Source: Saccostrea cucullata (Eukaryota). Taken from it: a DNA stretch of 64,000 nucleotides. The position numbers and the translations under genes were made by a program. The DNA lies in contig NW_026940558.1 of assembly GCF_032062105.1 (NCBI RefSeq), forward strand, positions 1 to 64,000. Reading direction: 5' to 3'. The notes beneath the pieces were generated by a model that did not search any database, had not been told where the DNA came from, and saw nothing but the letters and a program-made list of their open reading frames with translations. This document shows, piece by piece, positions 1 through 56,805 of the stretch; the first letter of the stretch is position 1; each line of letters starts with the position of its first letter.

Positions 1-3000
1 AAGGTGATATTCCAGATTTTGTACAAATTGTACAATCAGCACCGCGTTCGACAAGCATTTTCAATACAATGATGGATGGATTCTCGCTATCGACTGTCTT
101 ATACAGCGCCGTCTCCCCTTCTTGATTTTGTAAATTGACGTTAGCACCAGCTTCAAGCACCACCTTCACTGTGTTTGCATTATGCCCTGTACATGCTGCT
201 ATCAAAGGCGTATTCCATAATGTGCTTCGATTGATTTGAGCTCCAGCATTTAATAGTTCTTTTACAACATCAACATTTTCCAAATGGCATGCGGCAGTCA
301 GAGGAGTGCTATATTTACCCTGTAAATTAACATCAGCCCCCGCTTCAATCAGTTCCTTTACAATATTTATGCTTCCATACTTACATGATATTATCAGTGG
401 CATATTATCTTCATCAGCATCATGGTGTAAATTGACGTCTGCTCCAGCCTCTATCAACTCCTTCACTACATTCAAATGTCCCCCTTTACATGCAGCTGTC
501 AGTGGAGTGCTATATCTACTCTGTAGTTTGACATCAGCCCCCTTTTTAAGTAATTCTTTCACCACATCTCCGAATCCATTTGTGCACGCAGCTACCAATG
601 GTGTATTATATGCACCCTGTGGATTAACAACTGCTTTTGCATTCAAAAGCTCTTTAACCATTTCTAATTTTCCTCTCTTACAGGCAACTGTCAACGGTGT
701 TTTGTATTTATTTGGTTTCCTTGGATGCCAAGGATTGAAATTGACTTTGGCTCCAAATTTCAGCAATTCCTTCAAAACATCCAATCGTCTACATTTACAA
801 GCAGTAATTAATGGTGTTTTCCATACATACTTTGGATTAACATCAGCCCCTTTTTGAAGCAGTTCTCTCACCATGATCAGATTGCCATTTAGACATGCAG
901 CTGTCAGTGGTGTTGTATGATGATAACCCGGTCCATTCGCTAGGAACCCCGAAATTGTCTCTGGATTGATGTAAATGCCGAAAGAAGATGCGATTAATCG
1001 AACCATCTGTATATATTTTAAACGATCAATCCATATTTGCTGTGGATTAACCGAAGCCCCCATTTCAAGAAGATCTCTCACAAGGTTTAAATCTCCATCT
1101 AAACAAGCAGCAGTCAGTGGTGTATACCATTCTTTATTGTGTTGATTGATATCAGCACCAGCCTCAATTAGATATTTTATTAAACTTTTATCCTTTTTTC
1201 GTCTAACAGAACTTAATAATGGTGTATTCCCATCATCATCTTGCTGGTTGACATCAGCTTTTGCTTCAAGAAGTTCTTTTATTAACGACAAATTTGGATG
1301 AATTCTTGAACATGCATTTATCAGTGCTGTACCGGTCAAACGCAATGAATTGACATCGGCCCCAACTCGTAGCAGTTCAATGACTACATCGGAATGATTT
1401 TCACGACATGCAGCATTTAATGGTGAATCATACAGACCCTGAGGATTAACTTTTGCTCCTTTCTTCAGTAGTTCTGTCACCACAGAAATGTGTCCTCCTT
1501 TACATGCAGCTGTCAATGCATCCATTGTACATATACTTCCACATTGTAAATTAATGTTGGCCCCAGCTTTTAAAAGTTCCCTCACTATAACCAATTCACC
1601 ACAACTACATGCAGATATCAGAGGGTTATTGAAATCCTTTTTTTGATTGACAATGGCCCCTGATTGCAGCAATATTTGTACTACATTTAGATGTCCATTT
1701 TCACATGCAGCTATAAGTGGTAAATTACTTGCAGACTCTAAATTTGTTGAAGCTCCACAAGTAATCAGCTCCTTTACAATACCTGAATATCCACCTTTGC
1801 ATGCTTTTACTAGTGGTGTATCGAAATTACACTCTAAATTGACATTTGCATCCATTTTGCAAAGTTCTCTCACAACACTCAAATGTCCAGCACTGCATGC
1901 TGCTGTCAGTGGTGTATGACTATGACCCAGTTTGTTAACATCAGCTCCTACACCTATCAACTCATTTACAACAGAAACATGACCAAATAAACACGCTGCT
2001 ACTAGAGGGGTATTTTTTCTAAATAAAATTCCCCTAGAACGCACTGCCCAATGAGAGTAGACATGTGGCGTTCTGTTGATTGAGTAGTTTAAATCGACAT
2101 GTTTCAGTAAGATCCTAACAGTCTCCACATCGCCCCCATAACAACTGAGAACAAGTAAGCGGGTTTGTTCTACCGCAGAGTTTTGAATGTTTTCCTTTTC
2201 ATACAAGGATGCAAAGCTAACTTTTAGAGAGTCTGAAACAAGTATTTCATCAAAATCATCTATCACTTTATTTATATCACTAGCATTGGTTCCCTGTTTC
2301 GATGTTTGACCAAGATTTATAAGATCAGAATTCAAATTTCCAAATAGTGCAGACGATGTTTCGTTGTGTAGTTCAGTTTGATGTATGATGTACCTAAGGA
2401 TTTGGTGATGTCCATAGTAAATAACCCAACTGATCACTCTCACATAGCATACTAATGGCATCAAAAACATGTGTCGTCTGTCTAGCAGTAGATCCTCTAT
2501 ACAATCTTTAAACTCGTTGTTCTTTTTCTTATCATTTCCATCTTCTTCCCTTTTGAGTATTTTAGACATTTTCTCCAGTTTACTTAGAAAGAGTTTTTTT
2601 AATTCTACATATGTATGTTTCTCTAGTACATTAATAAATGCTTTACACAACTGGTTGTCCTTTAAAGCATTATTCATAAACACGTCATACAGTTCATAAT
2701 TTTCTATATCTTTGTACAGTCTCTTAGCTAACATTGGATACAGGTTAATAGACACCCTTATACACAGATCTGTACCCTCCCTGTTTTCAGTCTTTTCTTC
2801 ACTGCTTATATCAGTTGCCTCCACTTTTGTTTCCATGTTTTTCTGTTTTTGTGTTTCACATGTCTGAAGTTTTACATAGTTTGCAATATAACTACTTTTC
2901 ATATATTCTATAATCAACTCTGGAAACTGTCTACCAAAGTGATATGCTGTTATTTCAAACATGGAGTCATGAACAAAAGTGAACTCTCTACCACGACGTT

Positions 3001-4027
3001 TTGTGTATGTCCCCTCCATTGCTGACAAAGCTTTCACAAACTTAAATGTATCTGTTGAACTTGTAACTTCACAGCTTTCTAACACCCTGTGCTTCATTTC
3101 CCGAAAACATTTATTTTTCTCATCTTTTAGAATGTCTTCAGAAAGCATGTTGTTATACGTTTTGTGTATGTCCCCTCCATTGCTGACAAAGCTTTCACAA
3201 ACTTAAATGTATCTGTTGAACTTGTAACTTCACAGCTTTCTAACACCCTGTGCTTCATTTCCCGAAACATTTATTTTTCTCATCTTTTAGAATGTCTTCA
3301 GAAAGCATGTTGTTATTCAACGTGCACAACACCAAAGTTGCATAGAATAAACCGTTTCTTTGTTGCATTTTGTCGAATTCCTCGACAATGCATTGGATGG
3401 GACTGATAAAAAAGCGTTCACCAGTGATTCTAAATTTTTCCTCATTGGAATATAGTTTACACAATAAAGGAAACATGCGAGAGGCTTCAGTAAGCATTGC
3501 AGGAGACAACAAATCTCTGTCTAACCCATGCTTTTCAAGAATCTTTCTTTGGTCTTCTTCATTCAATTCATTCTCAGAGCTATGAAGCTTAATAGTATTT
3601 TGTGCATTAGTTAAAAAGGATTTGTTGCATTGGTTAAAAAGGGTTTTTCTGCATGTCAAGAGAACCTTTGTTTTCACAAAAGACGGTTTTTTTAATTTTT
3701 CCACGTACTCTAAAAACGATTCTAACTTTGCTTTGTTAACACCCAATACACCTACGACATCATTGATAACAAAAACCTGTGGATTCTGAGGATCACAATA
3801 CTGTGTGAGGTCTCTAAAGTCCAACATAGGTACCACTTCGTATTCTTCCTTCTGGAGAAGAAGAGCTATATGCTGAACTGTGGCGGATTTGCCGGATCCC
3901 GGGACACCAACAAAAGTCACATATGGTTGTTCTCTCACCCTCTGTAGCATTTCAGGGAACCCATGAGTTTCAACAAAAACCGAATCTTCTTCTTTCCATT
4001 TTTTGATATATTCTGTCTCGTGTTGTG
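1..4027 (-). CDS. Large exon: nSTAND3-like P-loop NTPase, helical region and ~20 ankyrin repeats; open at window edge; frame broken by duplication at 2996-3316
   Basis: Acceptor atcttttag ends at 4028 and is in frame with ORF 3255..3950: Walker A GVPGSGKS, Walker B VFVINDVVG, sensor-1 LLTCR. After the duplication the frame resumes (FTFVHDSMFEITAYHFG). The ATG at 3097 is in frame with the codons at the window edge, with repeated TPLxAACxxGHxxVVxELxxxGADVN units from ~2170 to 1. Confidence 0.85.
2996..3316. repeat. Tandem duplication of coding sequence (161 bp + 160 bp)
   Basis: 2996-3156 and 3157-3316 are identical except cccgaaaacat vs cccgaaacat. Confidence 0.95.
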
Positions 4028-4383
4028 CTAAAAGATATTTAGTTTATTTAATAAAATATTTTTTTATAATATATGCAGAAATACTTTATTTATTTGGAGT
4101 TAAACTCTCCACATTTTTCATATTGTTGAACGGTTTAAAATTTCTTTGGCATTTTCTCATAACGATTTTTAAATATATATGTATACAGTATAATATTTTT
4201 TCCAAACTATTACATAAAAAAGTGCTGAAAGGTTTGTTTCCATTATTTACTCTTTTGATCTAATAAAATATAATCAGATAACACTTAACTTCAAAGTACA
4301 AAATAAAAAGACATATTTCATGGCTAGATGCAATGGTATTGAATAAAAACATGCATATAATCAGAACTAATGTATTAACATAC

Positions 4384-4428
4384 CTTTAACATGTGCAGGG
4401 ATCACGCAGTGTAGACTTTTAATGTCAT
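4384..4428 (-). CDS. 45-nt linker exon (DDIKSLHCVIPAHVK) of HEPN-nSTAND-ankyrin gene
   Basis: Acceptor ttggtttttcag and donor AAG|GTATGT. Phase 1-1, and it keeps the frame between the HEPN exon and the NTPase exon without stops. Confidence 0.75.
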
Positions 4429-4750
4429 CTGAAAAACCAATCCGTCATTATGAAACCATGAAAAATGACTTTTTCTCAATGATTTTTCGAATTTCAGAAT
4501 AAAAAAAAAATTTGAATACAGAACTGCAAATTTACTGTTATCATTTTTATTTAAAAGAGAACCCTTTACAAAACATTTAAGCAAAAACCATGTTATTTAT
4601 TTACTGTTTACCGTACTGTTTACCACCATTCAATAGAACCAGAGCCAAATTTCAGATATAAGTAAATCGAAATTAACTAGTTCTGAATTGTAAAACAATA
4701 ATTTACGGCTAAGAATCTCCCACTTCTAATCAACAATACTTAATACTTAC

Positions 4751-5378
4751 CTGAAAGGTTTTCAACCGTCTTTTGTAATTCGTCAATCACTAAAAGTTTA
4801 TCGATGTATTTTTTCTCCAACTCTGGATCCATTGAGCATGTTTTGATTTCGTCAACAGAGTCCTGAAGAGACGTGTTTGTTCCAAGGTAACCCTCTAACT
4901 CTACAATTATGTAACGAATATTCCTCCATTCTTGTCTAAAATCCGACTCCTTTAAAGAAAAATCTGACGTGTGTCCATAGTATTTGTTCCTAATTAGTCG
5001 AATCCTTTCAATGTAAGCAGACACACTTCTATCTCCGGGGTTTGGCTGATTTCCCCATCCCGCTGCATGTTCTGTAACATTGCACACGTTACGTAAAAGT
5101 AAATATAGAATTGTGACGTCAAAGTCTGAATAATCTCCGCAATATTGTTTCGTAAAAGGCGGGAAAATGAGATCTGTCTGTTGTTTGGAAAGAGGATTTT
5201 TTGCCTTCTGGTTCTTAAGGTGATCTATCCAGGTCCTAACCGTACTTGATAAAGTAGAGGGGGGTATTTCTTTACCGAGAATGTCCCTCAACACATCGGT
5301 ACAAGGACCCAAGAGAAGTCTAGCCACTCGTGCTAGGTTTGTTGTTTCTGTTGTGGATGTATATTTTGACAGAGACAT
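4751..5378 (-). CDS. First coding exon of HEPN-nSTAND-ankyrin gene; DZIP3/hRUL138-like HEPN domain
   Basis: ORF 4740..5378 has SDFDVTILYLLLRN, GWG..P and IERIRLIRNKYYGH (R-x5-H HEPN motif). Acceptor tttttttatccag lies just upstream (exon starts 5394, short 5'UTR). Donor CAG|GTAAGT at 4751/4750 is phase 1. Confidence 0.85.
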
Positions 5379-6762
5379 TGTAGACCTTTTACACCTGGAT
5401 AAAAAAAGATAATATATTGCGTAAAACCTACTAGTATCACCTCTTTTGATGGAAACATTCTTTTATTTTTTTTAAACAGTCATAAAATAAGTTTATGTAA
5501 AACATCACTTAAGGATATGTGAACCTGACGTTTTTGAATCCACCGCGCAACTCGAACTGCGGAAGATGGGAACGGTCAATGTCGTGATCATAGAACATAT
5601 AATTTTGCTAAAACACAAGTTTAAAGGATTTAACAGCGGTTAAATAGTAAAATATGCCAAATTAATCAACATTGCATGAATTTTATTAATTTTGGCTGTT
5701 TGACTGTTCCAACCCCGATAATTTACGACATTACTCCCTAGCCGATTTGCGACGCCATGTTTTGTAGAGAAGGACGCAACGATGCATTTGCAAGGAAAAA
5801 AACAGTTTATACGCCGAAAATAGATTATACGGTTATATTTAGACGAAAATATACAGATTGGTGCCGTTCGGTTTCATGTAACAACTGCACAAGCGATGTC
5901 ACACTCACCCCGAATGCAGTTCCACGATGTACTTCATTGTTTTTCACGTAAGTAAAAGTAGGCCTAAACTAACAGCAGAATAAACATGCACCAAACACAT
6001 GGATAACCGGAGTTTACCTGACACCTTAATATACATTTATTTATTATTAGGTTGTAATTTATAGCTGTATAGCATCATCGAAATTCAATTTACTCTGTTT
6101 CCAGCCGGGATCAACAATGATTCGAATATTAGCCTACAGAAAATTTGCACAATTTTCACATATATATCCAATAAAAATTTTCATGAGGTATTTATTGGAT
6201 TTACTTTTTGTTTACCAGTGTCAAATTACCAAATTAGGCAAATACTGAAATAGCAATTCGCTGGCCAAGTAACCAAATTACATTATAGACAAATCAGTTT
6301 GGCATACTTATATATACATGTATTTACACCATCTCTGTTGGGTTTTCGACGAAATCCTGACTTACGATAGGTTGGAGTCTGTCAAGCTATTAAAGGAGGT
6401 AGATTATTTATATCTAGTCAATTGTAAATCAATACAAGGTCGATGTAAAGTTCTTTTGGAACACTTTGAACAACTCAAATTCACAAGCTTAATATTTTTA
6501 GTGTTTGCAGTTGGCAAGGTTAAAGTTATACATGTAAGTAGCATAAATAATGAGAGAAACATTTTCTTCTTTACTGAAAACCTATAACACATACTGATTA
6601 GTTCATCATTTTAGCACGAAAACAACATTACAAAACTAACACAACGTGATGTCATAATATGTACTATATAAGCATGATGAAGCATGTAGCAGAGAAAAAC
6701 ATTTATAAACCACAGATAATACATAAATGTTTCATTGGTGGGGGTAAATTCGTTGCATACGG

Positions 6763-6877
6763 TAGTATTTTAGTGACAGAGTGCGGGATGATACCTAGTC
6801 AGTAGACTCGGCTCCGCCTCGCCAGGTATAAAATATACTAAGCAGGTATCATTGCATACCCTGTCACTAAAACACTA
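6763..6877. repeat. Small imperfect inverted repeat / MITE remnant
   Basis: tagtattttagtgacagagtgcgggatgatacct pairs imperfectly with aggtatcattgcataccctgtcactaaaacacta. Confidence 0.55.
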
Positions 6878-6950
6878 TGTAATTTATAGTCTGTGCAGTG
6901 CAAAATTTGTCTTATTTTAAAATGATGTACTATTTAAGATATGACATTAA

Positions 6951-7363
6951 AGCTGAACATTTCTCTTAAATAGACACTGTCAGACGGTGTATATAAACTG
7001 TTTGATTTCGTTACACCCGATTGCACACTCGAAACTCGTGGCCGAGATGTAGTACTCCTATCGTTGTGTTGGATTTTTTGCGTTTATTTCTTGTTTGTAT
7101 GTGCATTTTCTGTTTGTAAATAATGTATTGACCTGCATATTTCATGATACTTAAGTCCTGTTTCGGAAAAAATGCGTAAAATTTGATATTTTCATCCATA
7201 TTGAGTAGCACGCTTTGTAAGATATGCGTCTACACTCGTCGGATATCTATAGTGAAATACATTGAACTGACTGGCGATCTGCTCCTTATATACGAGTTGT
7301 AGGGAGAGCGTTGAAGAACGGGAAATATGGCGGACTATGCCTATTTACGAGTAGTGTTCAGCT
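6951..7363. mobile_element. Kolobok-like MITE nested in the larger element
   Basis: TTAA|agctgaaca ... tgttcagct|TTAA. Confidence 0.65.
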
Positions 7364-8184
7364 TTAATGTGTAAAATGTTGACCAATTTATTCCTTCAAA
7401 ATTGAATAATTTTGTGACATATTTGTTATTTGAACAGGTATAGAGAAGGAAAAGAATCAACATATGTCAGCAGTTAAAATCCACCTACTCAACTCTAGAT
7501 AGCTGTTCCTGTGGATCCAAATGAATGAAAAGATCTCTGTGTGTTGCAAACAATAGAATGGGTAGGAGTGAATGAAAAAATTGTTTTTTAAGATTAAAAA
7601 ATGAGGAAGTGATCTTCGACATGCATTTGATTCTGATTGTGATTGTGTGAAGGGTGGTATATTTAGTTTCTTGCCTTGATATGGACAGAATATGAAGTGT
7701 CAGATTTTTTTTTCCAAGATCACAAGAGACAAATTATGACAGATTATTTTGTTTCATTAAAAATATTATATGTGAGGGGGAGAGCTTCATTGTAGAGAAC
7801 AATGTACATATTCCAGTGTAAATATTCTAAGGTCAAATTAATTCCAATATCTATTCTCAGAATCAAATGGTCCTCCCTTTACATGTAACTTTTAAATATG
7901 ATAATAGAAAATCCAGTAGTATAATATTTTGAAATTTCAATAGTCTAGTAGTCAATCCTTATAAATTCATGTATCAGTAACTGCAAAGGCTTCAAATTCA
8001 TAAACTGATTGACAATAAAGTAACAATTCAAGTTTTAAATAACCCTGGTAGATATTACATGTACTTATTTACATGTTTACTATATATATCCATACACACC
8101 ATTAAGACATGAAGTTTAAAACTAAAATGAAATTTATTTTCTAGGCTAAGAATGGTATTGTTGTGTCAAAGCCTGAAATTTGCA

Positions 8185-8430
8185 TGGCACAGTTGTTAGA
8201 GCAGCTCTCTATTTTCTCAAAGTAAGGAGCACTGTGGAACATGGAGGCCAGTCCTTTGGATGAAACTGCATAAACTGAGATCCCCTTGCAGTAGATGTTG
8301 GCATGAAAAAGATCCCTCACAGCTCAACGTCCATAAGTACCGAGTATAGGTATGAAGTTGCAGCCCTCCACCAGCAAGTGGTAGCGTCTTCATATGAGTG
8401 AAAAAAATTCTTGAGAGGGACATAACACAA
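8185..8430 (+). mobile_element. Degenerate tRNA-derived SINE (Meta-type central domain likely)
   Basis: A-box-like tggcacagttgttagagc. Central gttggcatgaaaaagatccctcacagctcaa and 3' catatgagtgaaaaaaattcttgagagggac resemble common bivalve SINEs (recognition from memory). Confidence 0.5.
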
Positions 8431-8539
8431 AGCAAAGGCTGAAGTATTTGCTTCAGAAAAGACCTACAACTACAGTGATCATTATTTGAACAAAGTATGT
8501 GACAAAAAAAGCTTGCAGTTGAAAGGCAAAGAAAAGAAT

Positions 8540-10360: not shown

Positions 10361-12610
<2,250 letters not shown>

Positions 12611-25596: not shown

Positions 25597-27126
25597 GTGA
25601 AAGCAGGCAACTACAGACTGATATCCATTCTTCCAACATTATCAAAATTATTTGAAAAACACATAGCCAATCAGATATGTAACTTTAACTCTAGCTATGA
25701 TCTCTTATTTAAATCACAATCTGGATTTCGAGAATTTCACTCATGTCAAATGGCTCTAACAAAACCCACAGATAATTGGCTACAAGCTAAGGACCAAGGA
25801 AATTTAGTAGGCATAACTTTCGTCAATTTTAGCAAGGCATTTGATTTGGTTAATGATGATATCCTTATAAATAAACTTCAATCATATCACTTTGACCAAA
25901 TGGCTATTAAATGGTTTCATTCTTATTTAACTTCAAGGTCTCAGTGTGTAAAAATAGGTACATACTCCTCTGATTTTTTGCCCGTCACAGCAGGAGTGCC
26001 CCAAGGATCTATCTTAGGTCCCCTATTATTTTTATTTTATATAAATGATCTCCCTTTACATGTAAAAAGAACAAATATTGATATGTTTGCTGATGATTCA
26101 ACCTTACATACATATCATAAAAATATAGAAGGTATTGAGAATGCCCTAAAGTTTGATTTGTGTAATATAGAAAATTGGTGTTTCAAAAATCAAATGGTGT
26201 TAAATATCAAGACAAAATGTATGCTCATGGGAACTCAACAAAGAAAATCAAGAATAAATTCTACTGAACTAAATTTAAATGCTTCAAACAAATTAATTGA
26301 AAATGTTTAATCTGAAAAGCTTTTGGGAGTAGATATTGGCCATTCATTGCGCTATAAGTATCATATCGACTCAGTTTGTAAATCTTTGACTTATAAATTG
26401 AATACTTTACGCAGAATTGAAAATTTTCTTCCCTTACACAGGAGAAACCTTTTTTATAATGCAAACATTCTGCCTTCTTTGAATTATTGTCTTACTATTT
26501 GGGATAATGCGCCAGATGCTAGCATAGACAGAGTTTTTAGATTGCAAAAAAGGGCAGCCCGGATTATTTAAGATATGGCTTATGATGCCCCTTCACTACC
26601 ATTATTATAAAAACTTGGATGGCTGACAATATATGAGTTAATTGTTTTTCATAAATATATATTACTGCACAAAACACTTCATGCTATGGCACCAACTTAT
26701 TTAAGAGATTCCTTTGAATTTATTTCTTCTAATAATTATGTTCTTAGATCTGAAACAAACTATGATCTTCATCTACCGAAATATCGAACAAATCAATTTA
26801 AGAATTCTTTTCATTATTCTGGTGTTCATTTATGGAACAAATTACCCTTGCATATCCATTTTTCACCAACTGTACAAACTTTTCGTAAAAAAGTAGAAAA
26901 ATTCATTATAACATGTCGCAACTAAAAGTTATTTGATTCCATGTTCTTCTATTGATCTGTATATGTCCTTGTATTTTCACGTCATGTTGTATTATTTATT
27001 ATAATATTGTACAATGTTTTTGTAATTGTATTATTGTAAATGTGTTTAGTGGGCCCCGAGGAAGACTAGTGCATTGCACTAATCGGGTTACCCTCTTTAA
27101 ATAAAGTATTAATATTATTATTATTA
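25597..27126 (+). mobile_element. 5'-truncated CR1/L2-group LINE with disabled RT ORF
   Basis: NYRLISILPTLSK, GVPQGSILGPLLF, YINDL and FADD motifs, in-frame stops, 3' aataaa followed by a (tat)n tail. Same family as 61691-64000. Confidence 0.9.
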
Positions 27127-43009: not shown

Positions 43010-44848
43010 CAGACCTGGGGTCAATTACTTTGAAATGTAATGCATTAAATTACAATTTCTTTAGAATTTTTATCATTACAATTAAAATTACCATTACTCT
43101 CATTCAGAAAAGTAATTAATTGAATTACAATTACTTTGTTAAAGTAATGAATTACATTACATATTACATTTTATAAGAGAAAAACACAAAACGTATGACC
43201 ACACAACTTATACCTATAAATTAAATTTCACAGTTTGTGCTCGATTTTAAATACACTCTCCCTCAGATCTATTAATCTGAGCGGTATTAGGAGTTTTTAT
43301 TCATGTATCTGTTTATGTAGTTTATTAATCCAATATACAGTTGACAAAGAAAGTGGATCAGAACACTTTCTACAATATTGTAGTTTTGTTCAATATAAAT
43401 CAAGTATTAAAAAACTTAATGGATTAATTAGCACTTCTAATTAACTAAACAGGTTTATTCATTCTTTCATTTATTCTCTCAAAAAAACATATACATGGTA
43501 CAAGAGGTACATATATACATATTTACAATAACTATGGACGAACAGAAGTTACAGAAGGACAGAGTCAAAAAAATTGGTAATAAATATACACAATTTTCGT
43601 AAAAATGATGGATCTGTACTTGTCATCAAGTTACAAAATTTAATCATATTTGGATTTACATAGTATTTCTGCAACAAAAAATCCTTTCGGGTACTATTTA
43701 ATGCATTTTATTAAAGTAAATTATGGAATTCGTCTCCTATCTGATTATTATTACATAAATTGCACACTCTTTCATTTCTTCCAACATTTTTCCATCTACT
43801 CATCTTTATTGGAAGACAATGGTTACATGTTCTGAATTTTGAAAGGATATTTCTAAATTTTCTTGGTAGAATAGTTAAATATTTTTCACATTCAAACTTT
43901 GTTTTAAAAATTCTATATGTAATACCTTTACTGGAATTATTCATATCACTATACCATTTTTGTAAAAACTGGTCTTTGAGCTTTTGGTTTATTGTGGTTG
44001 CAATCCATTTAACACTATGAAAAGTTTGATTAGTCCAAATATTACAGAGCCCCTTTGTATTTTAAAAGAATATTCTGTATGAAAGATATCCAAGGATTAC
44101 TAATCCCATTTTTAGTGTATTTATTATAAAGATGTAAATAAATAAATCTAAAGATCTTATTCTCATTTCCATGTATCAAATTTCCCCAGTAAGATATCAT
44201 TCTTGTATAAATGCGCACATGCCTCGGGTAACATAACGTCCAGTTTCCCCGTATACCATAAAACTCGGTGTAATTCTACTCGATTTTAAGTTTAAAATAT
44301 ATTTCAAAAATCTTAAATGTAGACGTTCGATTTCGATATATAAATATTTTCAAATCCCCATATTTCACATCCATAAAACAAAACAGGAACAACAACTTTT
44401 TCAAAGAGATCTAGCTGACAGTCCAGAGATAGATTATATAAACGATTTTTTCTTATAATGCCGTACATTGCCTTTTGCGCTTGGTTACGTAAGTGTTTCT
44501 TGGCCTTTGAAAAAGACCCTGATCTTGTGAATAAAATACCTAGGTAATTGAAATCTTTAACAGTTTCTAAAACATCGTCATTGTATTTAAATGTATTTTT
44601 GGGGGGTTGTCCTTTTGAAAAAATGACAATTTTTGTTTTCTTAACATTAACATGGAGTTTCCACGTTTTGCAATATACAGAAAATTCATTTAATGCATGT
44701 TGTAAATTATTTGCGGTTTCAGCTAAAATAACCGTATCATCAGCATAAAATAAAATAAACAGCTTGATAAAAATGTTAAAATTATCCTCAATCTCTTTTG
44801 AAAAATTCTCTAAACCGTTAACATTCTTAGTTATTGATATACAATGAA

Positions 44849-45880
44849 AACAAGCATTACGAAAGTATTTCATAAGCAATACATGTCCCCTACCGGGTTC
44901 CCCTTTTCTCTTCGGGGTTTCATTTATTAGAGCCTGTGTATGAAAAATTGTTACTTAAATATGGACATGTCAGTTATTACTTGAATATGAATGAAATGTA
45001 TTGGATCTGCTTTACAAGGAAAGACTCGTGACGTCTTTGAATGCTATTTGACACACACACACATGCTTTGATCAGAACAGCTGAGTTTACATGGTTGAAC
45101 AACAATTTTGTTCCAGAAAAAAATCAATCTTGATCTATATTTGTCACTATAAATGTATCCAGCAAGTTTCAAATCATGATAATCTCGTTTAGAACATTAA
45201 TGCAGTAGTGCATCACGACATTAATTTAGTGCATCACGAACCCTTTTGTGAATCCAATTATTAAATAAAAAAAATAAAAATACCACAATTCCTTCAGAAA
45301 TGAATGAAGTAGAACGAAATGCAAACTTGATCTATAACTTATCAATATATAAAAGCTATCCAGCAAGTTTCAATTCATGACAATCTCGTTTAAAAACATA
45401 AATTGAGTGCATCACGACATTAATTTAGTGCATCACGAACCCTACATGTATATTTAACCCAATGATAAAATTAAAAAAAAAAAAAAACAAAAAAAAAAAA
45501 ACATAATTCTTTCAAAAATCAATTAAGCAGAACGAAATGCAAACTCGATCTATAACTAATTAAGGTAAAGTCTCATACTAAAAACCAGCTCAATATTTGT
45601 AAGCGTCAAGGAGAAAAGTGCGGAAAACCCTTAAAAATTGAAAAGGCCGTAATTCCGTAAAAAATCATTGAATCGGAACGATATTCATATTTGATCTGTA
45701 ACTTATCAAGATACACCCACGTACCAAAAATCAGCTCAATTTCTGCCAGCGTTTAGAATAAAAGCGTGGAAAACCAAGTGGGACAGACTGACAGGCAGAC
45801 GGGGACAGACAGCTAGACAGACAGACGGACAGACGCAGAGGAAACCTATAGTCCGCTCCGGTTTCACCGGTAGGGGACTA
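44849..45880 (-). mobile_element. HINE element inserted into the LINE RT
   Basis: Reverse-orientation copy of the 37471-37989 family, with internal tandem units. Confidence 0.8.
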
Positions 45881-48215
45881 ATAAAAAAGGTGAAAGATTT
45901 TCACCAAGTCTAACCTTAACATTGCAGTTGAAAAATTCAGAAGACACACCATTCACGTTAACTCTTGACTTTATGCCTGCATACATATTTCTAATATAGT
46001 TGAAACACTTCCCACTAACACCGTTTGAAAATAATTTGTACCAAAGATCGTCTTTCCATACAGTGTCCTGTTTACAGACAGAAATCCTGTTTAGAATCGA
46101 TGAACGCACAGTATAACCTTTTTTGCTATTTATATGGGCTTGTGACAGAAAATGCATTATCAATATATAGTCTAAAGTAGAATATCTCTTTCTGAAACCT
46201 GTTTGACTCTCATTTATCAGAATGATATTTTCTGCATAGATTTCTAATCGTTTTTTCAAAATACTCGTAAAGAGTTTCCCTTAGCAGCTCAACAATGTGA
46301 TCGGCGATAGTTCTCAGGTTGTGTCGGATCTCCTTTATTTTTATAAATAGTTTTACTTCCGGTGTAACGACGAAAAGTGACCCCCGTAGAATATTGACCA
46401 GGGGGTCATTTTTCTACGTAGAAAAATGACCCAGGGTCAATATTCTACGACAAATGGGGTCATTTTTCGACCGTAGAAAACCATTCCAGACCAGTAATTC
46501 TACGACTACACACACGTTGAAAAATGACCCCCATAGAAATTTGACCCCCTCCATTTTTATAAAATAATAAAACTTTACATCTGTGTCTCCTGAGATTTTG
46601 TTATACTTTCAAATGTAAGGAGGAGGGGTGTACTTTACTCCTTTCATCATATTTGATGGCATAAATTTAAAATGGCATCGTATTAAATCGATGTACCTGG
46701 TATGGAGGGTTTTTTGTTTGCATAATCTCAATGAATAATACTATTAATTTATTGAAGAGCATTAATTTATGACTATATTCTGTGTGTTTTTTCTCAATCA
46801 AAGATTCTGTTCCTATTCTGGTATGATGCGTATGTATCTGATAACCATAAGCTTGTACAAAGGCCGCCGAAATTAGCACTTTTCATCATTTGAATTCAAT
46901 TTTGAAATATTTACAAAACCAAAAAAGATCGTATAGAAGTTAGAAAAGCAATGCACTACATAAAATCAATTCCCTTAGTTCTTACATTTAACTTACATAG
47001 GATTGGATGCATTCTGCTTTAAAATCACAGGCACTAGTTTGACCCATAGTATAATAACACAAGGTATCTAACTCCGATTTACACCGAGTACCCCCCTCCC
47101 TTACAATCGCGCTCGTGTACACTTTCAGAGGAAATGCACGGGTAAACTGTTTATACCTATGTCTTCAACGATAATTTATCTACACAACCATATCTGACAT
47201 GCTTGTCTTTATTTTCTTTTATCTCCGTAATCAGCGGCAAAACTCTGCTCGTCGAGTGGAAAGTAAAACTGTACAATATAATTGGATGTTCTAATCTCGG
47301 GCAAACAGAAAAATTAAAAAAAAAAATTTTGCCTATTTAGGTAGTTTAATATACACTTCTTGGTATGGATAGTGTAACTCTTTTGTAACATCATACCCAA
47401 AACCGTGAGCGCTACGGGCTGTATCCTGTTGTTTTCCTATCAATCAAAATTGTTTTTAAGCATTATATGTAATATTTTAAATAGTTAATTTAAAAAATAC
47501 TATAGTAATATAATTCAGCAATAATAAAATTTGTTAAAGTCTTTATAAATATAGCAGAGCAGACCTGCATATAACTGAATTGCAGCATTGTATCCCGTAT
47601 CAGACTCGGCTACAGACAAATATATAGTTTCGCTCCCTATTGATGAGATTTTTTGGCAGGAACATACTGCACGATTTCGTTTTTCCCCTTTAGAAAAAAA
47701 AAAAATTGATGCTCATTTTTCGAAATTTCAAAAACAAATGTTTGGGTATTAATATGTATTATTTGAGTGGGTTAGGGGAGATTTTTGTGTAAAAATCTAT
47801 AGATAGAATTTACCATAAAATTGTAAGATCTTAGAAAGGTTGTAATTAGTACACTGTACTTCACTTATAATTACTTATATGGCAATTCCATATAATTATG
47901 GTTAAAACGAATGGAATTTAAAAGTTTACGTGTATATAATTCAGAGAAGAGTACTCCGCTTTACGGGTTATTTCTTAGCTAGAGATCTGCCGTATGCTTA
48001 ATGAGTGACAATTTTGAACCCAACACATTTTTCAACAGTAATAGGTTTGTGTGTGCCGTGTGGTGAAAGGACTTAGCATGATTTTTTTTTCAGTGACAAT
48101 TACTTCACATCAACAGTAATATCCCTTGCTTAAAATGCTTGTAAAATTGGATGGCCACGTGGAACACCGTATTGTCATTACAATGCAGAAATTTTGATAG
48201 AAGTTGGAATCTGTC

Positions 48216-51200
48216 TGTGCGGAAATAGTTAACCATTAAACACACACCCGTGTTTTGAAAGGACAGGTACTGGTTAATTCAACCCAAAAATTATTCGTAT
48301 GATAAGCATCACACTCCCCGCCTGAATTGTAAGTAAGTACAATTCACATGTACATAAAACTCAATGCAAAAATTCTTAAACAAAATGTCAGTTAAACCAA
48401 CAGATACAGTCTGCATAGCAATAAACACTGTCAATACATAGAAACAAGAGGTACAATCTGTGTTACTGGTCTAATGTATAAAGATGTCTTTCCATCTTTC
48501 ACAGTCTTTACTTGAACCTTTCGAACGCGTTTGTCCTCACTTGGAAATGTTTTCACCACAATTGACAAAGGCCATTGATTTCTAGCACAGTTTGGATCGT
48601 TCAAAAGAACTATGTCCCCTTCGCAGACGGAGGGTTCATCAGATTTCCATTTTCGACGTGGTTGAAGATTGTGCAAATATTCACATTTCCAGCGAGACCA
48701 GAAAGTATCGGCTAAACTCTGTACGCGTTTCCACTCGCTCTTCAGAATGTCCTTTGAACTGAATGATCCAATAGTGTCTCCAACATCATAATTGTGAGAC
48801 TTCTGCGTGAGTAATAGCGATGGTGATAGTACGGTGGGGTTATCTGGATCACAAGATACAGAGGTAAGAGGTCTGGCATTAACAATGGCTGATACCTCAG
48901 CCATCAGAGTGTTCAATAGATCATGAGTCAAAGTATGCTGATTTGACAGCATCGAGTTAAGAATCCTCTTCACCACCCCAATCAATCGTTCCCATGCTCC
49001 ACCATAATGTGCAGAATGTGGTGGGTTGAATATCCACTTAGAGTTGGATGATATTAAGAACCTCTGCACAGAGTCCTCCTCAACATTTACACGGTCAATG
49101 GCTAGATCATCTAAGGCCCCAATAAAATTTGTGCCTCTGTCAGACCGAAAAATCTTCACTGCACCACGCATAGCAATGAAGCGTCGTAGTGCGTTTATGA
49201 AGGCAGCTGAACTCATGGAGTCGACTAGCTCAATATGTATAGCTCTGGTCACCAGACACGTAAACAGAATTCCCCAACGCTTAGAATTTGCACTGCCCCC
49301 GCGAGTCTTTCGTGTCACTACTTGGTAAGGCCCGAATGCGTCTACCCCAACATTTGAAAATGGCGGTCCTGGTTCTAAGCGGTCCGCTGGCAAGTCAGCC
49401 ATCTTTTGTGTGGAAAGGCGACCCCTCATTTTGCGACAAGGTACACAAGCTGATATCACGGAAGATATCAATCGCTTACATCGAGTTATCCACAATCCAG
49501 CAGAACGAATGACACCTTCGGTAAAGAGTCGGCCTTGATGGGAAACTTCATGATGGTAGTGTCTGACCAATAGCTCAGATATGTGATTCCGACCAGGGAG
49601 AAGTATCGGATGTTTAGATTCAAATGAGAGGAGGGATTTTGCTAAACGTCCACCAACCCTGATAAATCCATCGTTGTCCAGGTATGGATCTAAAGATGAT
49701 ATCTGACTAGTTTTTGAAACAGCTTTGCCAGTCTGGAGGCAACAGATTTCTTCTGGGAATGCTTCCTTCTGAAATTCTTTGAGCACATGATCATGCGCCT
49801 CATGGCGAATATCCACAATACACACAGTCTCACATGGCTGTAAATTTCCCTGACTTCGACGATTTTTCCACTGACGCACAAAAAGCTTCAATCGAGCTAT
49901 CGCATTGACAACAGACTTCCAACGTGAAAAACGCTTGAATCGGGATATACCGAGTCCATGAGTTGGTGCAACACTTGTCATCAGACAACTAGTTCGAATT
50001 TCTTTGTCGGAATCTGGATTTAGCAACTCAAAGGAAACTGGTTCCTTGTCGGTTTCAACAGATGGTGTTGGTCCTCTTAACCATGCACTATTTTGCATAG
50101 CATGGGCGTCAATTGATCGTGTACCATCATCTGCAGGATTCTTGTCTGTGGGTATGTAACTCCATTGGTGTGGAGATGTGGTTGAGTGAATTCTAGCGAC
50201 ACGATTTGCAACGTATGTGTGAAAACGGCGTGATGTATTAAAAATGTACCCAAGTACAATCTTGCTGTCTGTATGGAAACGAAAGTCCTGTAGAGATATA
50301 TCTAAGTGTTGAGAGATTGTTTCAGCAATTTCTACTGCAAGAACTGAGGAACAAAGTTCAAGCCGTGGAACAGTATGACCTTTCAAAGGCGCAACCTTTG
50401 CTTTTCCGAGAATGAACCCCATATGTGTTGGGTCTGTAAGATCAGTAAGATAGGCAACAGCGGCTATTGCCTTCTCGGAGGCATCGCAGTAGATATGAAC
50501 TTCCTTCTGATCGCAACCAGAATACGACACTGGTAAGTATGGTCGAGGAATTCGCACATCATAAAGATCGAGCAATGAACTTCTCCAACGATCCCACTCT
50601 GAAAATAACTCTTCCGGAAGTGGTTCATCCCAGTCAACAGTTCCATGGATCAAGTCTCTGAGCAGGAGTTTCCCTTTGATCACAACAGGTGCCATGAAGC
50701 CCAACGGATCATAAATACTATTTATCGTGGACAAAACACCCCTTCTTGTAAACTGCTGTTTGTCATGGGAAGAACGAAACAAGAATGAATCGGTACCTAG
50801 ATCCCATTTAATGCCCAAACTCGCCTGAACTGGAAGACAATCCTTCCGCAAGTCAAGGTCCTTAATGTCTTTGGCTAGATCGTCAGTGGGAAACGCAGCC
50901 ATGACTTCATGGTTGTTGGACGCGATTTTATGCAAGCGAATATTGCCACCTTGCATCAGAGCTGTTTGTGCATCCTTGACAAGAGTAATCGCACTACTAG
51001 GTGTGGGAAGCGATGCGAGTCCATCATCCACATAAAAATCCTTGTGAATGTACTCAACAACTTTGGGTTCCGCATCTTGAACGCAAAGTCTTAAGCCATA
51101 GGTGGCAACGGAGGGCGAAGGCCGGTTCCCGAATACATGTACACACATTCGATATTGCACAAGGGGCTTGTTCAAATCACAGTCCTCATGCCAAAGAAAT

Positions 51201-54200
51201 CGTAGATAATTTCTATGTTTCGGCTCAACGCGGAAGCAAAAGAACATTTGCTGGATATCTGCGAGTATGGCTACGGGTTCTCTTCTGAATCGCATCAAGA
51301 CTCCAAGAAGACTATTAACCAGATCCGGTCCAGTCAACAGAACATCATTTAACGAAAGTCCATTGAACTTAGCGGAAGAGTCAAATACTACACGTGCCTG
51401 GCCTGGCTTCTGGGGATGGTAGACAGCAAAGATTGGCAGAAACCAACATTCTTCCTCTGGTTGTAACGGAGGAGCCCTCTCTGCATGACCGTTTTTGAGT
51501 ATCTTTTGCATGAATTCAATGAAGTGTGAGGCCTTGACAGAATCGTGCAGTAGACTCCTTTGCAAGTTTCTGGCTCGCTTGAATGCCATTGAATAGTTGT
51601 TGTCCAGTCTAGGTCGATCAGGTCGAAATGGTAGAGGTGATGTCCAGAATCCTTGTTCATCCTTATAGAATCCTGCTCCAACTATGTCTAGAAATTGTCG
51701 ATCCTCCACAGACATGCCCTCTTTCTCATCAAAAGGTGTTTTCAGGAAAACAGGATCGTCGTTCAAACGAAGAACACTCTGACAAGGCTCCATATAGGTA
51801 GGACGTCCATTTGATAATATTTGTGTCTTCAACACGTTGATGCGAGGTGGGACGTGACAACTTCCAAGGCAGGTTTCTCCCACTATGGTCCAGCCTAGAG
51901 GTAATCTCTGTGCAATTGGTTCAATGTCGGAACCAGTACGTTGTTCAAGCACATGGTGTGCCTTCAAAAGGTCTCTTCCAATCAATAAGGAGATGCTGGC
52001 CTTAGGATCTAATGGTGGTATGAACACTTCAATGTCAGAAAGATGTGAGTATGCTCGTGCAACTTCCGGTGTTGGGATCTCACTTCTGTTCTCTGGTATG
52101 AATTCACACTCGGTTACTATTGGCAGATCAAGGCAAACTGTTCTGTCCAAAGATTCTACGACTAGTCCAGATACACGTCTCCCCCATGTGTTAACTTTGC
52201 CTGTGCATGTAGACAAAATGTACGGAGACTGGGTACAGCCAACATCGAGCTTATCAAAGAGATATGGGGTGCCTAAAGTACTGGTACTCTGGTCGTCAAT
52301 AACAACGTAAGTCTTAAACGCATGTTCTACATGATCTTTAGGGTAGATCCACACTAACTGTATCTTCGCACATGATTTGCCAGAGAATCCCTCGCCACAG
52401 ACTGTGGTGCATGCTGCCACAACTTCATCAGCCACTGCTTTAGGTTGAGTCTCCCCGCCATGCGAAGTTGGTAAGTTATGACAGTCACTGTAAGTAGACC
52501 TCTTATCAAAAACTCCGTCCTCATGAAGAGCTGTAGGATGTGCACGCTGACAAACGCTACAAGTAACCTTCTTTTAACACTTTCGAAAGTCATGTTTTTG
52601 AATTTCACAGCATTTCAAACATATCGTTTTTGAACGTAGAAATTGTCTGCGTTTTTCAATTGTCAAAGAGCGAAAGGCACGGCACTGATTGAGAGTGTGG
52701 TTCGAACTCTCATGATAAGGACAGGAAGCTAGCTTGGTATGCAGTTCGGTCTCTTCGGTATCCTTAGTAACTGATGTCTTTTTAGCGGCTACATGTATTT
52801 GCTGTAAAGTCTGTGTTTTCGCCTTCGTCTGCTGACCATAAGTTTGCTGCGATTCATACATAAATGATGGATTATTCTTAATCCTTGCCATTTCCTTCAC
52901 AAACATCAAAAACTCTCTGAATGGAGGATACACAGCACGATAAGTGGTCTGATATTTTGCGGCTCTGTTTGTCCATTTTTCTTGGAGAGATGGCGGTAAT
53001 TTACAAACAATTGGCTTGATCCCCGATGAAGAGTCATAGTACGCAAACTGACTGGCATTAACTGGGTCATCTTTTAAAGAGGCTACTTCAGACAGTAGAT
53101 CTGCCAACTCGTAAAGTCTCTTGGGATCCTTGAGAGTTATTTTCGGAAAATCACTAATACGCAATTTTAAAGCTGATTCTAACATTTCAGGTGTTCCATA
53201 ACACTCGTCAAGCCTCTCCCAAATCAGTCTAAGTGCTCGGCTTGGATTGTGAGGATTTGCATTACGTATACGTAGAGCGGAAACCTTGGATTTACTTCCT
53301 AAGTAGCGAATCATGAGGTCAGCTTGATCAGTCTCATCCACATCCATATCTCTCATAGATCTCAAAAAGTTCGATTTCCAAACTTGGTATGATTCAGCAG
53401 TATCGTCAAATTCCCATTTTCGCTTTGACAACAACTCTTTCTTTAACATGAAAGTGACAAAGTCATTGGCGTGATCAGTCGAAGCACGATGTAGTGAATA
53501 ATCCAAATTTGTAGAGTCCAGTTGACGTGGAGGTTCAAAGGATGCAGTAGTTCGTTGTAGGTAAGGGTGAAATGTTGGGGCTTCTGGTCTTAGTGTTGAG
53601 CCGGAGTTGTCTTTGGTGCTTCTGATTCCGTTAATACGCCTCTGTTCTTCCAAGTGACTTTGGGCAAGTTCAGATTTCACAGTATTGCCATCTAAGGCAT
53701 CTGCAGCAGCGTCAGCCATGGCAGCCTCCTTTTTAAGAGATACACGACGAAGTTCAGTTTCAATGTCCAAAGCTTTCCTTTTAAGTGCGGCTTCCTCTTC
53801 CAAAAACTCCATGGCAGCCCTTGCCGCCTCTGCCCTAGCTCGCTTGTCTTCTGATGAACGATTCGATGATCTTCCATTGACACTACTGCGAGTGTGTAGC
53901 GAATCAATTTCTAGTCTAGCTTTAGCACGCTCCAGCTTCATCAAGGTTCTCTCCACTAGAATATTTTTCAAAGTTCGATCATCTTGGACCCTCTGGTAAA
54001 GCTCTAAACTTTCTTTTGTGTAGCACTTATTTAAATAGTCAAGGTGATGATCTATGAGATCAAAACACTTTCGGGACTCCGCATTTAGTCCAAGCTCTGT
54101 TATATATGGGTCATCACTTTCATTATAGTTAATGAATGACGTCACAATTGTCCATTGATCCTTGATCTGTTGATCAACCCGATTAACACGCGACTGGAAT

Positions 54201-54731
54201 TCCTCATTCTTTTTTCCTGTAAATACTCTGAGACGTTTACTTTCTGTACCTTCTACAGATTCTAACTGATGTGAGGTATCAGCTGTAGAGGGTTGAATGT
54301 TATCCGAGGTTGGATCCATTTTGGCTGATTGGCTCATAATAAGTCCTTTTACTGTGCTGGTATAGTCGGGGACGTCACAGCCAGTTAACCATTAAACAAG
54401 GAACACACATGGATTTGAAAACTGTATTGAATAGGTTTGTGTGTGCGTGTGCGTGTGGTAAAAGGACTGTATGTATGAAACACTTCTAAATTTAAAAGGT
54501 TCAAATACAATGAAACAAGAAATTCATCAAATATAATGCTTGTACAACGCACAAGAAATTAGGTGAATTCCAGCAATTTCAATTTTGACAGCAAACAATA
54601 TGTGCATTTACCTGAAGCTAATAAACATTCAAAAGAGACTAATTTTAATGCAAAAATATAAAAACAAACAAACCCTTTTTACAGGTACTGGTTAATTCAA
54701 CCCAAAAATTATTCGTATGATAAGCATCACA
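48216..54731 (-). mobile_element. Bel-Pao LTR retrotransposon
   Basis: 5' LTR 54353-54731 (TG..CA), shortened and garbled 3' LTR 48216-48313 (51 nt identical to the 5' LTR start), PPT caggcggggag, 5-bp TSD CTGTC at 48211-48215 and 54732-54736. Confidence 0.9.
48431..54337 (-). CDS. Bel-Pao gag-pol polyprotein (gag, Zn knuckles, protease, RT, RNase H, integrase) with one in-frame TAA at 52574-52576
   Basis: ORFs 52574..54337 and 48431..52435 share a frame (CLKCCEIQKHDFRKC*KKVTCSVCQRAHPTALH..SHGGE). Motifs: IDDQS, FYVDDGL, YCDASEKA, TVPRLEL, GVDAFGP, SDRGTNF, GGAWERL. Confidence 0.9.
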
Positions 54732-56805
54732 CTGTCTCTTGTCATGACTTCCGAAAATCCCGGTGTCCGGAATAGCCAAGAATTTTCGGACTGCTGCCAG
54801 TAGGTTTCTGTGCTGGGTTTTTTGACAACACCCATCGAAAGAAACAATCCTAAATAAGCAGACATTTCCTCGGCATCCGTTAAGTACCATCCATGTGTTC
54901 TAGAGTTTGGTTTTATAAGATGGATCTGTTAAAAATTGTTCTGCATACAATTCGTTTCATCTACGAGAATGTCGATAAGTCCTTTTCTGTCCTCTGGATT
55001 GGAAAGTTTTCTGAAATATTCTATTGGATGAGCCTCTATGTCCGTTGGGTCAACGGGACCCATATGCCGTGAGAACGGAAGGATATTGTGCGGATAGTCA
55101 AAATTTCCACATACCGTACGTTTGTCCACAATCTATTGATTTCTGGAATATTTTATTTATATCTGCATCACTTTCTGCGTCTGAATCTTCGGAAATATAA
55201 TCATAATCAGACTCATTGTCTGAAGCAGAATCCATATTGTCCAAATCACGCAAAATGACGTAAGAATGCCGATGACGTCATTTTGGACAATTTTTACGGG
55301 AACTTGTGTGTCTTGAGTATCATTATATAAGTTATAATACTGCTAGTTTAGTATAAAATATTTGATGCAAAATAATATTTTTTCAATTAATTTAAATATT
55401 AGATTTTTTTCAATGTATTATCATGAAAATTTATTTAAAAAACCCAAAATTTCAAAAGATGATTATGCCTGAAAATTGATAAAAATAGATCTCAAGTTGG
55501 TTTCTTTATAAAATAAGTGATATAGATCCTATATGGATAAAGTGTTAATTTCCTTAAAAAATGTACTAGTGTATTAAATGCTACGTAAATTCAATAACAC
55601 TATAATAAAGTATTTGTATACTAGCTCAATTATTTTTAATAAACCAAAGAGATTTTATTTCAATTGACAAGTGATACTAGTAATCAGAATTTAATTGGTA
55701 TGTAAAATTAAAATTAAACCAGATCCGAAAAAGTATGAACTTTCCTTAAGCTTACAGAAATGATCACATCATATTATAAGCTTACCTGTGTGCATTCGCC
55801 TAACAAGAATATTTCTACCAAAACGAATGTTTTTGCATCAAAAAATGACAAGGAGTCATTATTCTACGGGGTCATTTTTCTACAACACACACGGAGAAAA
55901 ACGACCCCAAGACCATAATTTCTACAGAAAAGGGGGTCATTTTTCTATGTAGAATATTGACCAGGGGGTCAAATTTCTACGTAGAAAAATGACCCCCGTT
56001 CAATATTCTACGGGGGTAACTTTTCGTCGTTACACCGGTACTATCCCAGAGTCAAAGATAAAATTAAATAATTTTTCGTATATAGACAGGAACAAAGAAA
56101 TGGTGGTACTAATATGTTCGTTTAGAATATGATCACTTCCGGGAGATTTGTTGTTTTTTTAGGTCTTTCACTGCCGACAAAATTTCATCTTGCGTAATTG
56201 GACAATCAAGTGTTTCATTATATCTACTTTGCTCAGTGAAATTAATTGAATCTGTTTCCTCTAAATCGACCTCATTGATATTTTTGAAGAAGTTAAATAG
56301 ATTGTTCAAATCAGCTTTACATGTGTCATTTTTATTTTGGCTATTTAATATTTTCCAGTATTCCTTTGTGTTGTTTGTTCGCAGTTTTTTAATTTTCTGA
56401 GATAGATCTTGTCTGTACTCAAGTATTGATGAATCCATTACTTTTTTATACTCTTTGCTAGCTAGTTTTAGATTCTTTTTAGATTCTTGGGTTTTAATTC
56501 TATTATGCATTCGTTTAGCTATTTTTTTTTCTCGCTGTTCTGCAATAACGATTGAACCAAGGTTTATCGGGTTTTTTCTTTGCATTTGGAATTTTATGTT
56601 TAATCCCAAACGATTCTTTGATTGTGCTTAAAAACACACTGCAAAGTTTTGACATTACATTACTCTAATGCTCTTTTTCCAGCCCATTTTCCAAATTTTT
56701 CTTCTTTAATTTTCGCAGTGTATATTTATAGCGATCTATACTAGCACGAAAATCGTCTGCTTTGTTTGCACACCATAATTTCACACTTGGCTGATCTTGT
56801 GTTTT

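Follow-up and report, generated by a model that had tools for sequence, protein, structure and literature searches.

We found that the minus strand at the start of contig NW_026940558.1 of the hooded oyster Saccostrea cucullata (assembly GCF_032062105.1; 1.17 Gb in 23,869 contigs) carries a gene joining a HEPN domain, an nSTAND3 NTPase and an array of ankyrin repeats. The window, meaning the whole stretch of DNA that was analysed, is the first 64 kb of this contig, and its position 1 is position 1 of the contig. The gene belongs to a large family, the intact members of which are probably NLR-like receptors with HEPN as effector, nSTAND3 as switch and the ankyrins as sensor. The copy in the window cannot, as assembled, make a full receptor unless a short tandem duplication within it is an assembly error. 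Computation in this analysis established the domain content, the motifs, the fold class, the size of the family and its purifying selection, together with transcription of a close allele or paralogue. An earlier interpretation made without database searches (the sequence-only reading) had proposed an effector-STAND-repeat sensor like NLRs and the prokaryotic Avs proteins. This proposal stands for the family at the level of computation, on its domain profiles, on R and H residues retained under purifying selection and on a fold of the S. echinata relative whose matches include Avs5, Avs4, NLRP2/7, ZAR1 and CED-4, but it fails for this locus as assembled because a frameshift separates the effector and switch from the sensor.

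The gene consists of a HEPN exon (exon A, coding for 209 residues from its ATG), a microexon and one large exon (exon C), and both of its introns are of the GT-AG type and in phase 1 (intron 2 spans 4383-4028; Table 1). Copies of the microexon are found at 86-87% in two paralogues (L002 and L003). The gene is truncated by the contig end and is about 200 codons short of its closest paralogue, on contig C17934. The three spliced coding exons described earlier were recovered, with their splice sites and phases, but not as a single open protein, owing to the frameshift in the large exon. Profile searches were done exon by exon with the curated Pfam cut-offs, and the HEPN, nSTAND3 and ankyrin profiles proposed as a check by the sequence-only reading all scored above them.

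The HEPN domain of exon A matches PF18738 (HEPN_DZIP3) with 108.5 bits (E 3e-31, cut-off 27) over profile positions 2-144 of 144, and the R-x5-H motif said to be intact is indeed present as RNKYYGH. Conservation of R and H in paralogues, another of the proposed checks, was found in 29 of the 30 closest genome copies, and the lone exception also carries a stop. In an alignment of 34 HEPNs with about 40% identity elsewhere, R130, N131 and H136 never vary. The AlphaFold2 model obtained for the domain in the window has a predicted local distance difference test score (pLDDT) of 86. Its best matches in a wide structure search were Csm6 (Z 8.0), AF0298 (7.1) and sacsin (6.6), mixed with unrelated helical bundles; AbiF, Cas13 and LsoA also lie near Z 6, and Foldseek returned no match for this model. 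Exon A encodes a probable RNA-cutting HEPN domain, as judged from these profile and motif data.

The NTPase matches PF20720 (nSTAND3) with 83.6 bits (E 1.5e-23, cut-off 27.2), whereas the NACHT profile reaches 18.5 bits on the same region, below its cut-off of 26.7. Membership of the NACHT, NB-ARC or Avs families was rejected, since the scores were under the cut-offs or there was no match. This result and the location of GVPGSGKS, LLTCR and VHDS confirm the P-loop NTPase that had been read from these motifs. Among the PADLOC 2.0 profiles, no Avs profile matched; just the candidate profile PDC-S73 did, on the NTPase (E 1e-10), and we found no paper on it. A sequence search of solved structures gave weak P-loop matches only. 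The Walker B motif is FVIND here and FVIDD in the family: DD is present in 86 of 92 homologues and ND in the other six (P0001-P0005 and P0053), which form one clade with 100/100 support spanning two Saccostrea species. A Walker B of the hhhhDD form with its Mg-binding Asp is absent from this copy and its clade. In bacterial EfAvs5, Mg is held by the Walker B Asp, and defence is lost in the D426A mutant (PMC11897194). The Asn weakens the case for a normal switch but leaves nSTAND3 ancestry unaffected. The hHD motif occurs as F-x-HD in most homologues and in this copy is located beyond the frameshift.

We modelled the first 800 residues of a relative from S. echinata (pLDDT 75). The nucleotide-binding domain (NBD) of the model matches AAA+ ATPases, and longer spans, reaching beyond the NBD, match the AVAST5 filament (255 residues, Z 11.0) and Avs4 (384 residues, Z 10.9). 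In Foldseek, EfAvs5 ranked third (template modelling score 0.24, 918 columns, E 1.5e-4), followed by NLRP2/7, ZAR1, CED-4, SAMD9 and Avs4. These model-based matches support a STAND module and do not single out Avs5.

The ankyrin region matches PF00023 with 343 bits in 16 stretches, and its 16 canonical and about four degenerate repeats agree with the roughly 20 divergent repeats counted earlier. A comparison of 764 repeats placed the variability at the loop residues before the TPL motif and at the ends of the first helix and of the repeat. Such positions resemble the binding surfaces of ankyrin arrays. At 910-1030 (minus strand), about 35 non-ankyrin residues lie between two repeats. There an RNA-type contig is one base shorter at 984 and shows another gap, and the frame may differ between alleles.

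We then investigated the reading frame of the large exon. Its reading as one frame was rejected on account of a premature TGA between the NTPase core and the VHDS motif and ankyrins. The three-exon product as assembled has 481 residues (HEPN, NBD and helical domain 1), without winged helix or ankyrins. VHDS and the ankyrins follow in a different frame from the NTPase, with no further stop in 1051 downstream codons, and effector, STAND module and sensor do not share one open frame in this copy. The shift arises from a tandem duplication, the two units of which are identical save for one base in an A run. An intron spanning the duplication was also considered and rejected, as relatives have a single unit in one frame; in the S. 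echinata relative P0002, one unit lies inside a single 597-codon frame. The other scored genome copies each match one side of the junction only, and none has the duplication. The RefSeq model of this locus (P0001, 'ankyrin repeat domain-containing protein 17-like, partial', 1286 residues, 100% identity) omits HEPN residues 35-102, the microexon and 3708-3196, which holds the sensor motif and the duplication, and thereby hides the frameshift. We rejected this model as evidence for an intact gene, since it bypasses the break by dropping conserved HEPN and NTPase sequence, and its name is a mislabel.

Public sequencing runs were examined for transcripts. In one run, guessed to be RNA, contigs are mostly 95-99% identical to the HEPN exon, NTPase and ankyrins. 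The RNA-type contigs cover 4840-5360 of exon A and, at 97%, 113-1301 of the ankyrins. One of them (X5) has intron 2 removed exactly (joint 4027/4384, CT..AC) and continues into intron 1. In the public runs examined, intron 1 was not seen spliced and no RNA-type contig spans the whole gene. For co-transcription of the exons, there is the intron 2 joint in one contig, with the gene parts on separate RNA-type contigs. Some samples contain spliced transcripts of a close allele or paralogue at a low level.

The HEPN exon has at least 150 scored matches in the genome (874 candidates) and the NTPase exon at least 148 (522 candidates), paralogues being judged from match tables, 30 short loci and public proteins. 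The matches are often in tandem clusters, with several further along the same contig and on C17934. The closest paralogue, C17934:8103-11002, is 94% identical, collinear over the ankyrins, and has a 1496-codon NTPase-ankyrin frame. Identity along this paralogue is a mosaic: the adjoining C17934:11002-11258 reaches 99%, the ankyrins 94% and HEPN, at the protein level, 86%, which suggests gene conversion or else an alternative haplotype. Public homologues with a named source come from Saccostrea, Ostrea, Crassostrea and Magallana. Many have all three domains under names like 'uncharacterized protein', just as the sequence-only reading had stated for bivalve annotations. The HEPN motif and Walker A occur together in 39 of 103 public homologues. 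In the S. echinata relative (L031:7600-10900), the ankyrin region lies in several frames under a model with many short introns, and this copy may be broken too; its last 170 residues have no match to a Pfam family. One S. cucullata model (P0033) has a fibrinogen C domain (PF00147) joined to HEPN-nSTAND3-ankyrin, and may be a fused model.

Pairwise ratios of nonsynonymous to synonymous substitution (dN/dS) are 0.15-0.23 for HEPN, 0.14-0.20 for the NTPase, 0.48 for the helical part after the NTPase and 0.31 for one ankyrin block. As estimated from these alignments, the family is under purifying selection that appears looser towards the sensor. Positive selection in the ankyrins, which the sequence-only reading had suggested looking for, was not seen in the single alignable block, which is not a full test. 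Module identities are decoupled, with 45% in HEPN against 84% in the NTPase for the pair P0008 and P0012, and 88% against 50% for P0012 and P0049; Ostrea shows the same pattern. Across P0006-P0051, Rx4H and Rx5H HEPN types are found on near-identical NTPases. Because of this decoupling and the phase-1 introns between the modules, exon swapping of HEPN and NTPase modules between paralogues is suggested, with the caveat that automatic gene models may join exons of tandem neighbours. Repeat number also varies widely among paralogues. Such variation and the decoupled module identities are as expected under host-pathogen conflict.

From the biochemistry of Avs/NLR proteins and of HEPN domains, we infer ligand sensing, oligomerisation, RNase activity and an immune role for the intact members. 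At rest, the ankyrin array would lie folded against the STAND module with its bound nucleotide. When a foreign or damage-linked protein binds the ankyrins, this module would be released, and the released modules would oligomerise as a ring or an Avs5-like filament. HEPN domains clustered in this way could pair to form a composite R-x4/5-H RNase site, and the cutting of viral or host RNA might then lead to a translation halt or cell death.

Several observations weigh against this receptor interpretation. Two deep oligo-dT RNA runs from 2026 under the same species label have essentially no reads on the locus, and none of the testable blocks gave a dN/dS above 1. An Asn occupies the place of the Mg-binding Asp of Walker B. 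The structural matches of the NTPase model are weak and common to ordinary AAA+ ATPases, NSF heading both lists, and the HEPN fold match reaches just Z 8, with none from Foldseek. The literature searched, which leaves out most subscription papers, yielded no experiment on a DZIP3-type HEPN-STAND protein. The family may be NLR-like with HEPN serving as an RNA-binding or scaffolding domain or an onward signaller instead of an executing RNase. Some HEPN domains are indeed non-catalytic RNA binders (PMC3710099), and many homologue models have no HEPN, though many of those are fragments. We regard this alternative as unlikely, since the invariance of R, N and H over HEPNs that have otherwise diverged so far is hard to explain without catalysis. 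It is highly improbable that the family is non-immune, serving in stress or RNA quality control, or spread as mobile DNA cargo. The window does have a high density of retrotransposons, and about 100 nucleotides (nt) upstream of exon A a high-copy repeat begins. However, the gene has no transposase, reverse transcriptase or terminal repeat of its own, is spliced, lies in tandem clusters under purifying selection, and shows a lineage-specific expansion, with birth and death of copies, of the kind usual among invertebrate immune receptors.

For the window copy itself, a recent null allele and a local assembly error are about equally probable. We put a little under an even chance on the duplication being an assembly error and the gene being intact in the animal, where it would encode a complete receptor of some 1,700 residues, as the closest paralogue does. 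The near-identity of the units apart from one homopolymer base, the position at a contig end in so fragmented an assembly, the undecayed dN/dS and the long stop-free frame downstream all fit this explanation. So does the longer (four-A) run at 3264 in both a DNA contig and an RNA-type contig of other samples from public runs. On the other hand, real recent breaks are frequent in the family. Just 24 of the 47 best NTPase matches have a frame of at least 1000 codons, a count in which introns and contig ends also shorten frames, and the ankyrin part of the S. echinata relative is scattered over several frames. That broken relatives are so frequent argues for real birth and death. No listed contig from the public runs bridges the duplication site in either form, and the best DNA run contains 27% of the words and is thus probably not from the same haplotype. 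The Walker B Asn clade could also have a disabled or altered switch and act as a decoy, a partner or a nucleotide-independent sensor, and the 481-residue stub, if made, could be auto-active or dominant-negative. We consider this improbable. The confinement of FVIND to one well-supported clade in two species and the existence of sensor-less HEPN-nSTAND3 models among the homologues (P0023, P0034, P0047 and P0051) speak for it. Yet EfAvs5 requires ATP binding and has no ATPase activity (PMC11897194), so the Asn may be tolerated; the NTPase of the clade is under purifying selection, and there is no evidence for transcription of the duplicated allele.

Returning to the receptor interpretation of the family, we propose as a tentative extension, held at somewhat less than even confidence, that oysters possess hundreds of Avs5-type (nSTAND3) receptors with a built-in RNase. 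The repertoire would be renewed through exchange, at phase-1 introns, of HEPN exons relative to NTPase-ankyrin exons, and the receptors would form a class of animal NLRs whose effector is a nuclease and whose modules can be mixed and matched. If the family does function in the receptor role proposed here, bivalves own a large arsenal of single-chain sensor-nucleases nearer to the bacterial anti-phage Avs proteins than to vertebrate NLRs, with a bearing on the resistance of oysters to viruses and Vibrio and on how STAND immunity arose and changed. Descriptions of this build date back to 2013, and the gain would come from experiment. For this purpose the present copy is a poor choice, being frameshifted as assembled, truncated by the contig end and atypical in Walker B.

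The rest of the window contains several retroelements (Table 1). The high-copy repeat upstream of the gene spans 5498-8539, has 86-95% copies on dozens of contigs and a nested insert near 6950-7365, and its near edge lies about 100 nt from the acceptor of exon A. The gene may be separated by this repeat from a promoter or non-coding exon further upstream. A Bel-Pao long terminal repeat (LTR) retrotransposon with open frames looks young. Reverse transcriptase frames of the long interspersed nuclear element (LINE) type are also present.

Table 1. Features of the HEPN-nSTAND3-ankyrin gene and of the remainder of the window (window positions).
Feature	Position	Strand	Remarks
Exon A	4751..5394	-	acceptor AG 5396-5395; ATG 5378; DZIP3-type HEPN core 5258-4806; phase-1 donor after 4751
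HEPN R-x5-H motif RNKYYGH	4971..4991	-	sequence; Asn follows Arg
Microexon	4384..4428	-	45 nt, phase 1-1, 15-residue linker
Exon C, first frame	3258..4027	-	nSTAND3 NTPase and helical domain 1
Walker A GVPGSGKS	3908-3885	-	sequence
Walker B FVIND	3773-3759	-	sequence
Sensor LLTCR (T-x-R, sensor-1)	3662-3648	-	sequence
Premature TGA	3255..3257	-	ends HEPN-NTPase frame at codon 482 of the three-exon reading
Tandem duplication	2996..3316		units 2996-3156 (161 nt) and 3157-3316 (160 nt); shifts reading frame
Exon C, second frame	2108..3154	-	winged-helix region with MHD-like VHDS (2974-2963), then helical arm
Ankyrin region	1..2107	-	about 20 repeats; open frame leaves contig at position 1
Tandem array	10764-11523		about 4.5 copies of a 166-nt unit, 87% alike
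LINE-type reverse transcriptase frame	25597-26310	+	
LINE-type reverse transcriptase frame	44313-46259	-	
Bel-Pao LTR retrotransposon	48431-54337	-	open gag-like (587 residues) and pol (1334 residues; Pao peptidase, integrase, DUF5641)
LINE-type reverse transcriptase frame	56133-56609	-	
Gypsy-type pol in pieces	57712-60522	+	reverse transcriptase/RNase H, integrase-like
LINE-type reverse transcriptase frame	61969-63924	-	651 residues with RVT_1

In RNase L, an ankyrin sensor controls a HEPN-type RNase that acts on dimerisation. Its KEN domain is classed as HEPN (PMC3710099). Compared with RNase L (ankyrin, pseudokinase, KEN/HEPN), the oyster gene has the opposite domain order, no kinase domain and a STAND switch; the likeness is an analogy only, with no evidence of 2',5'-oligoadenylate (2-5A) binding. 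Nor is the gene a strict animal NLR with NACHT and leucine-rich repeats (LRRs), as its NACHT score is under the cut-off and its repeats are ankyrins.

The idea of such sensors is not new, as oyster HEPN-STAND-repeat expansions were described computationally in 2013 and 2022 (PMC3710099, PMC9646362). DZIP3/hRUL138-like HEPN domains are fused to ankyrin, NACHT ATPase, TPR, CARD, DEATH and LRR domains (Anantharaman et al. 2013, PMC3710099 Table 1) and have lineage-specific expansions in Nematostella, oyster and Capsaspora with the motif mostly conserved (PMC3710099). The HEPN of the oyster gene is the same domain, but its NTPase is nSTAND3 by the profile scores and not NACHT. The pearl oyster genome encodes more than 50 HEPN-NACHT proteins, proposed as NLR-like sensors with the RNase motif noted (PMC9646362), and cnidarians have 17-83 (PMC8260672). 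With these proteins our family shares an N-terminal DZIP3 HEPN with Rx4-6H, a central STAND NTPase, C-terminal repeats, large expansions and copy-number variation, and they have been proposed as intracellular sensors and RNases. They use NACHT with LRR, TPR or WD40, whereas the oyster gene uses nSTAND3 with ankyrins, and its layout of HEPN exon, microexon and one large exon is unlike theirs. STAND, HEPN and ankyrins are among the variable domains of the Crassostrea immune expansions (PMC8195603). A literature search for HEPN, oyster and STAND NTPase returned nothing, and within the same limited literature no paper was found naming the HEPN-nSTAND3-ankyrin combination in molluscs.

Bacterial Avs5 (AVAST type 5) is a Sir2-nSTAND3-repeat protein (bioRxiv 10.1101/2025.07.08.663546) activated by filament assembly (PMC11897194). 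Like the oyster gene, it combines an enzyme effector, nSTAND3 with the T-x-R sensor motif and a helical repeat sensor in one chain, and its structures (9jap and 9nc9) are among the better STAND structural matches. Avs5 is prokaryotic and carries a Sir2 NADase and TPR/Sel1/PPR repeats, whereas the oyster gene carries HEPN and ankyrins at 10-12% identity; we describe this as a likeness without claiming a common origin.

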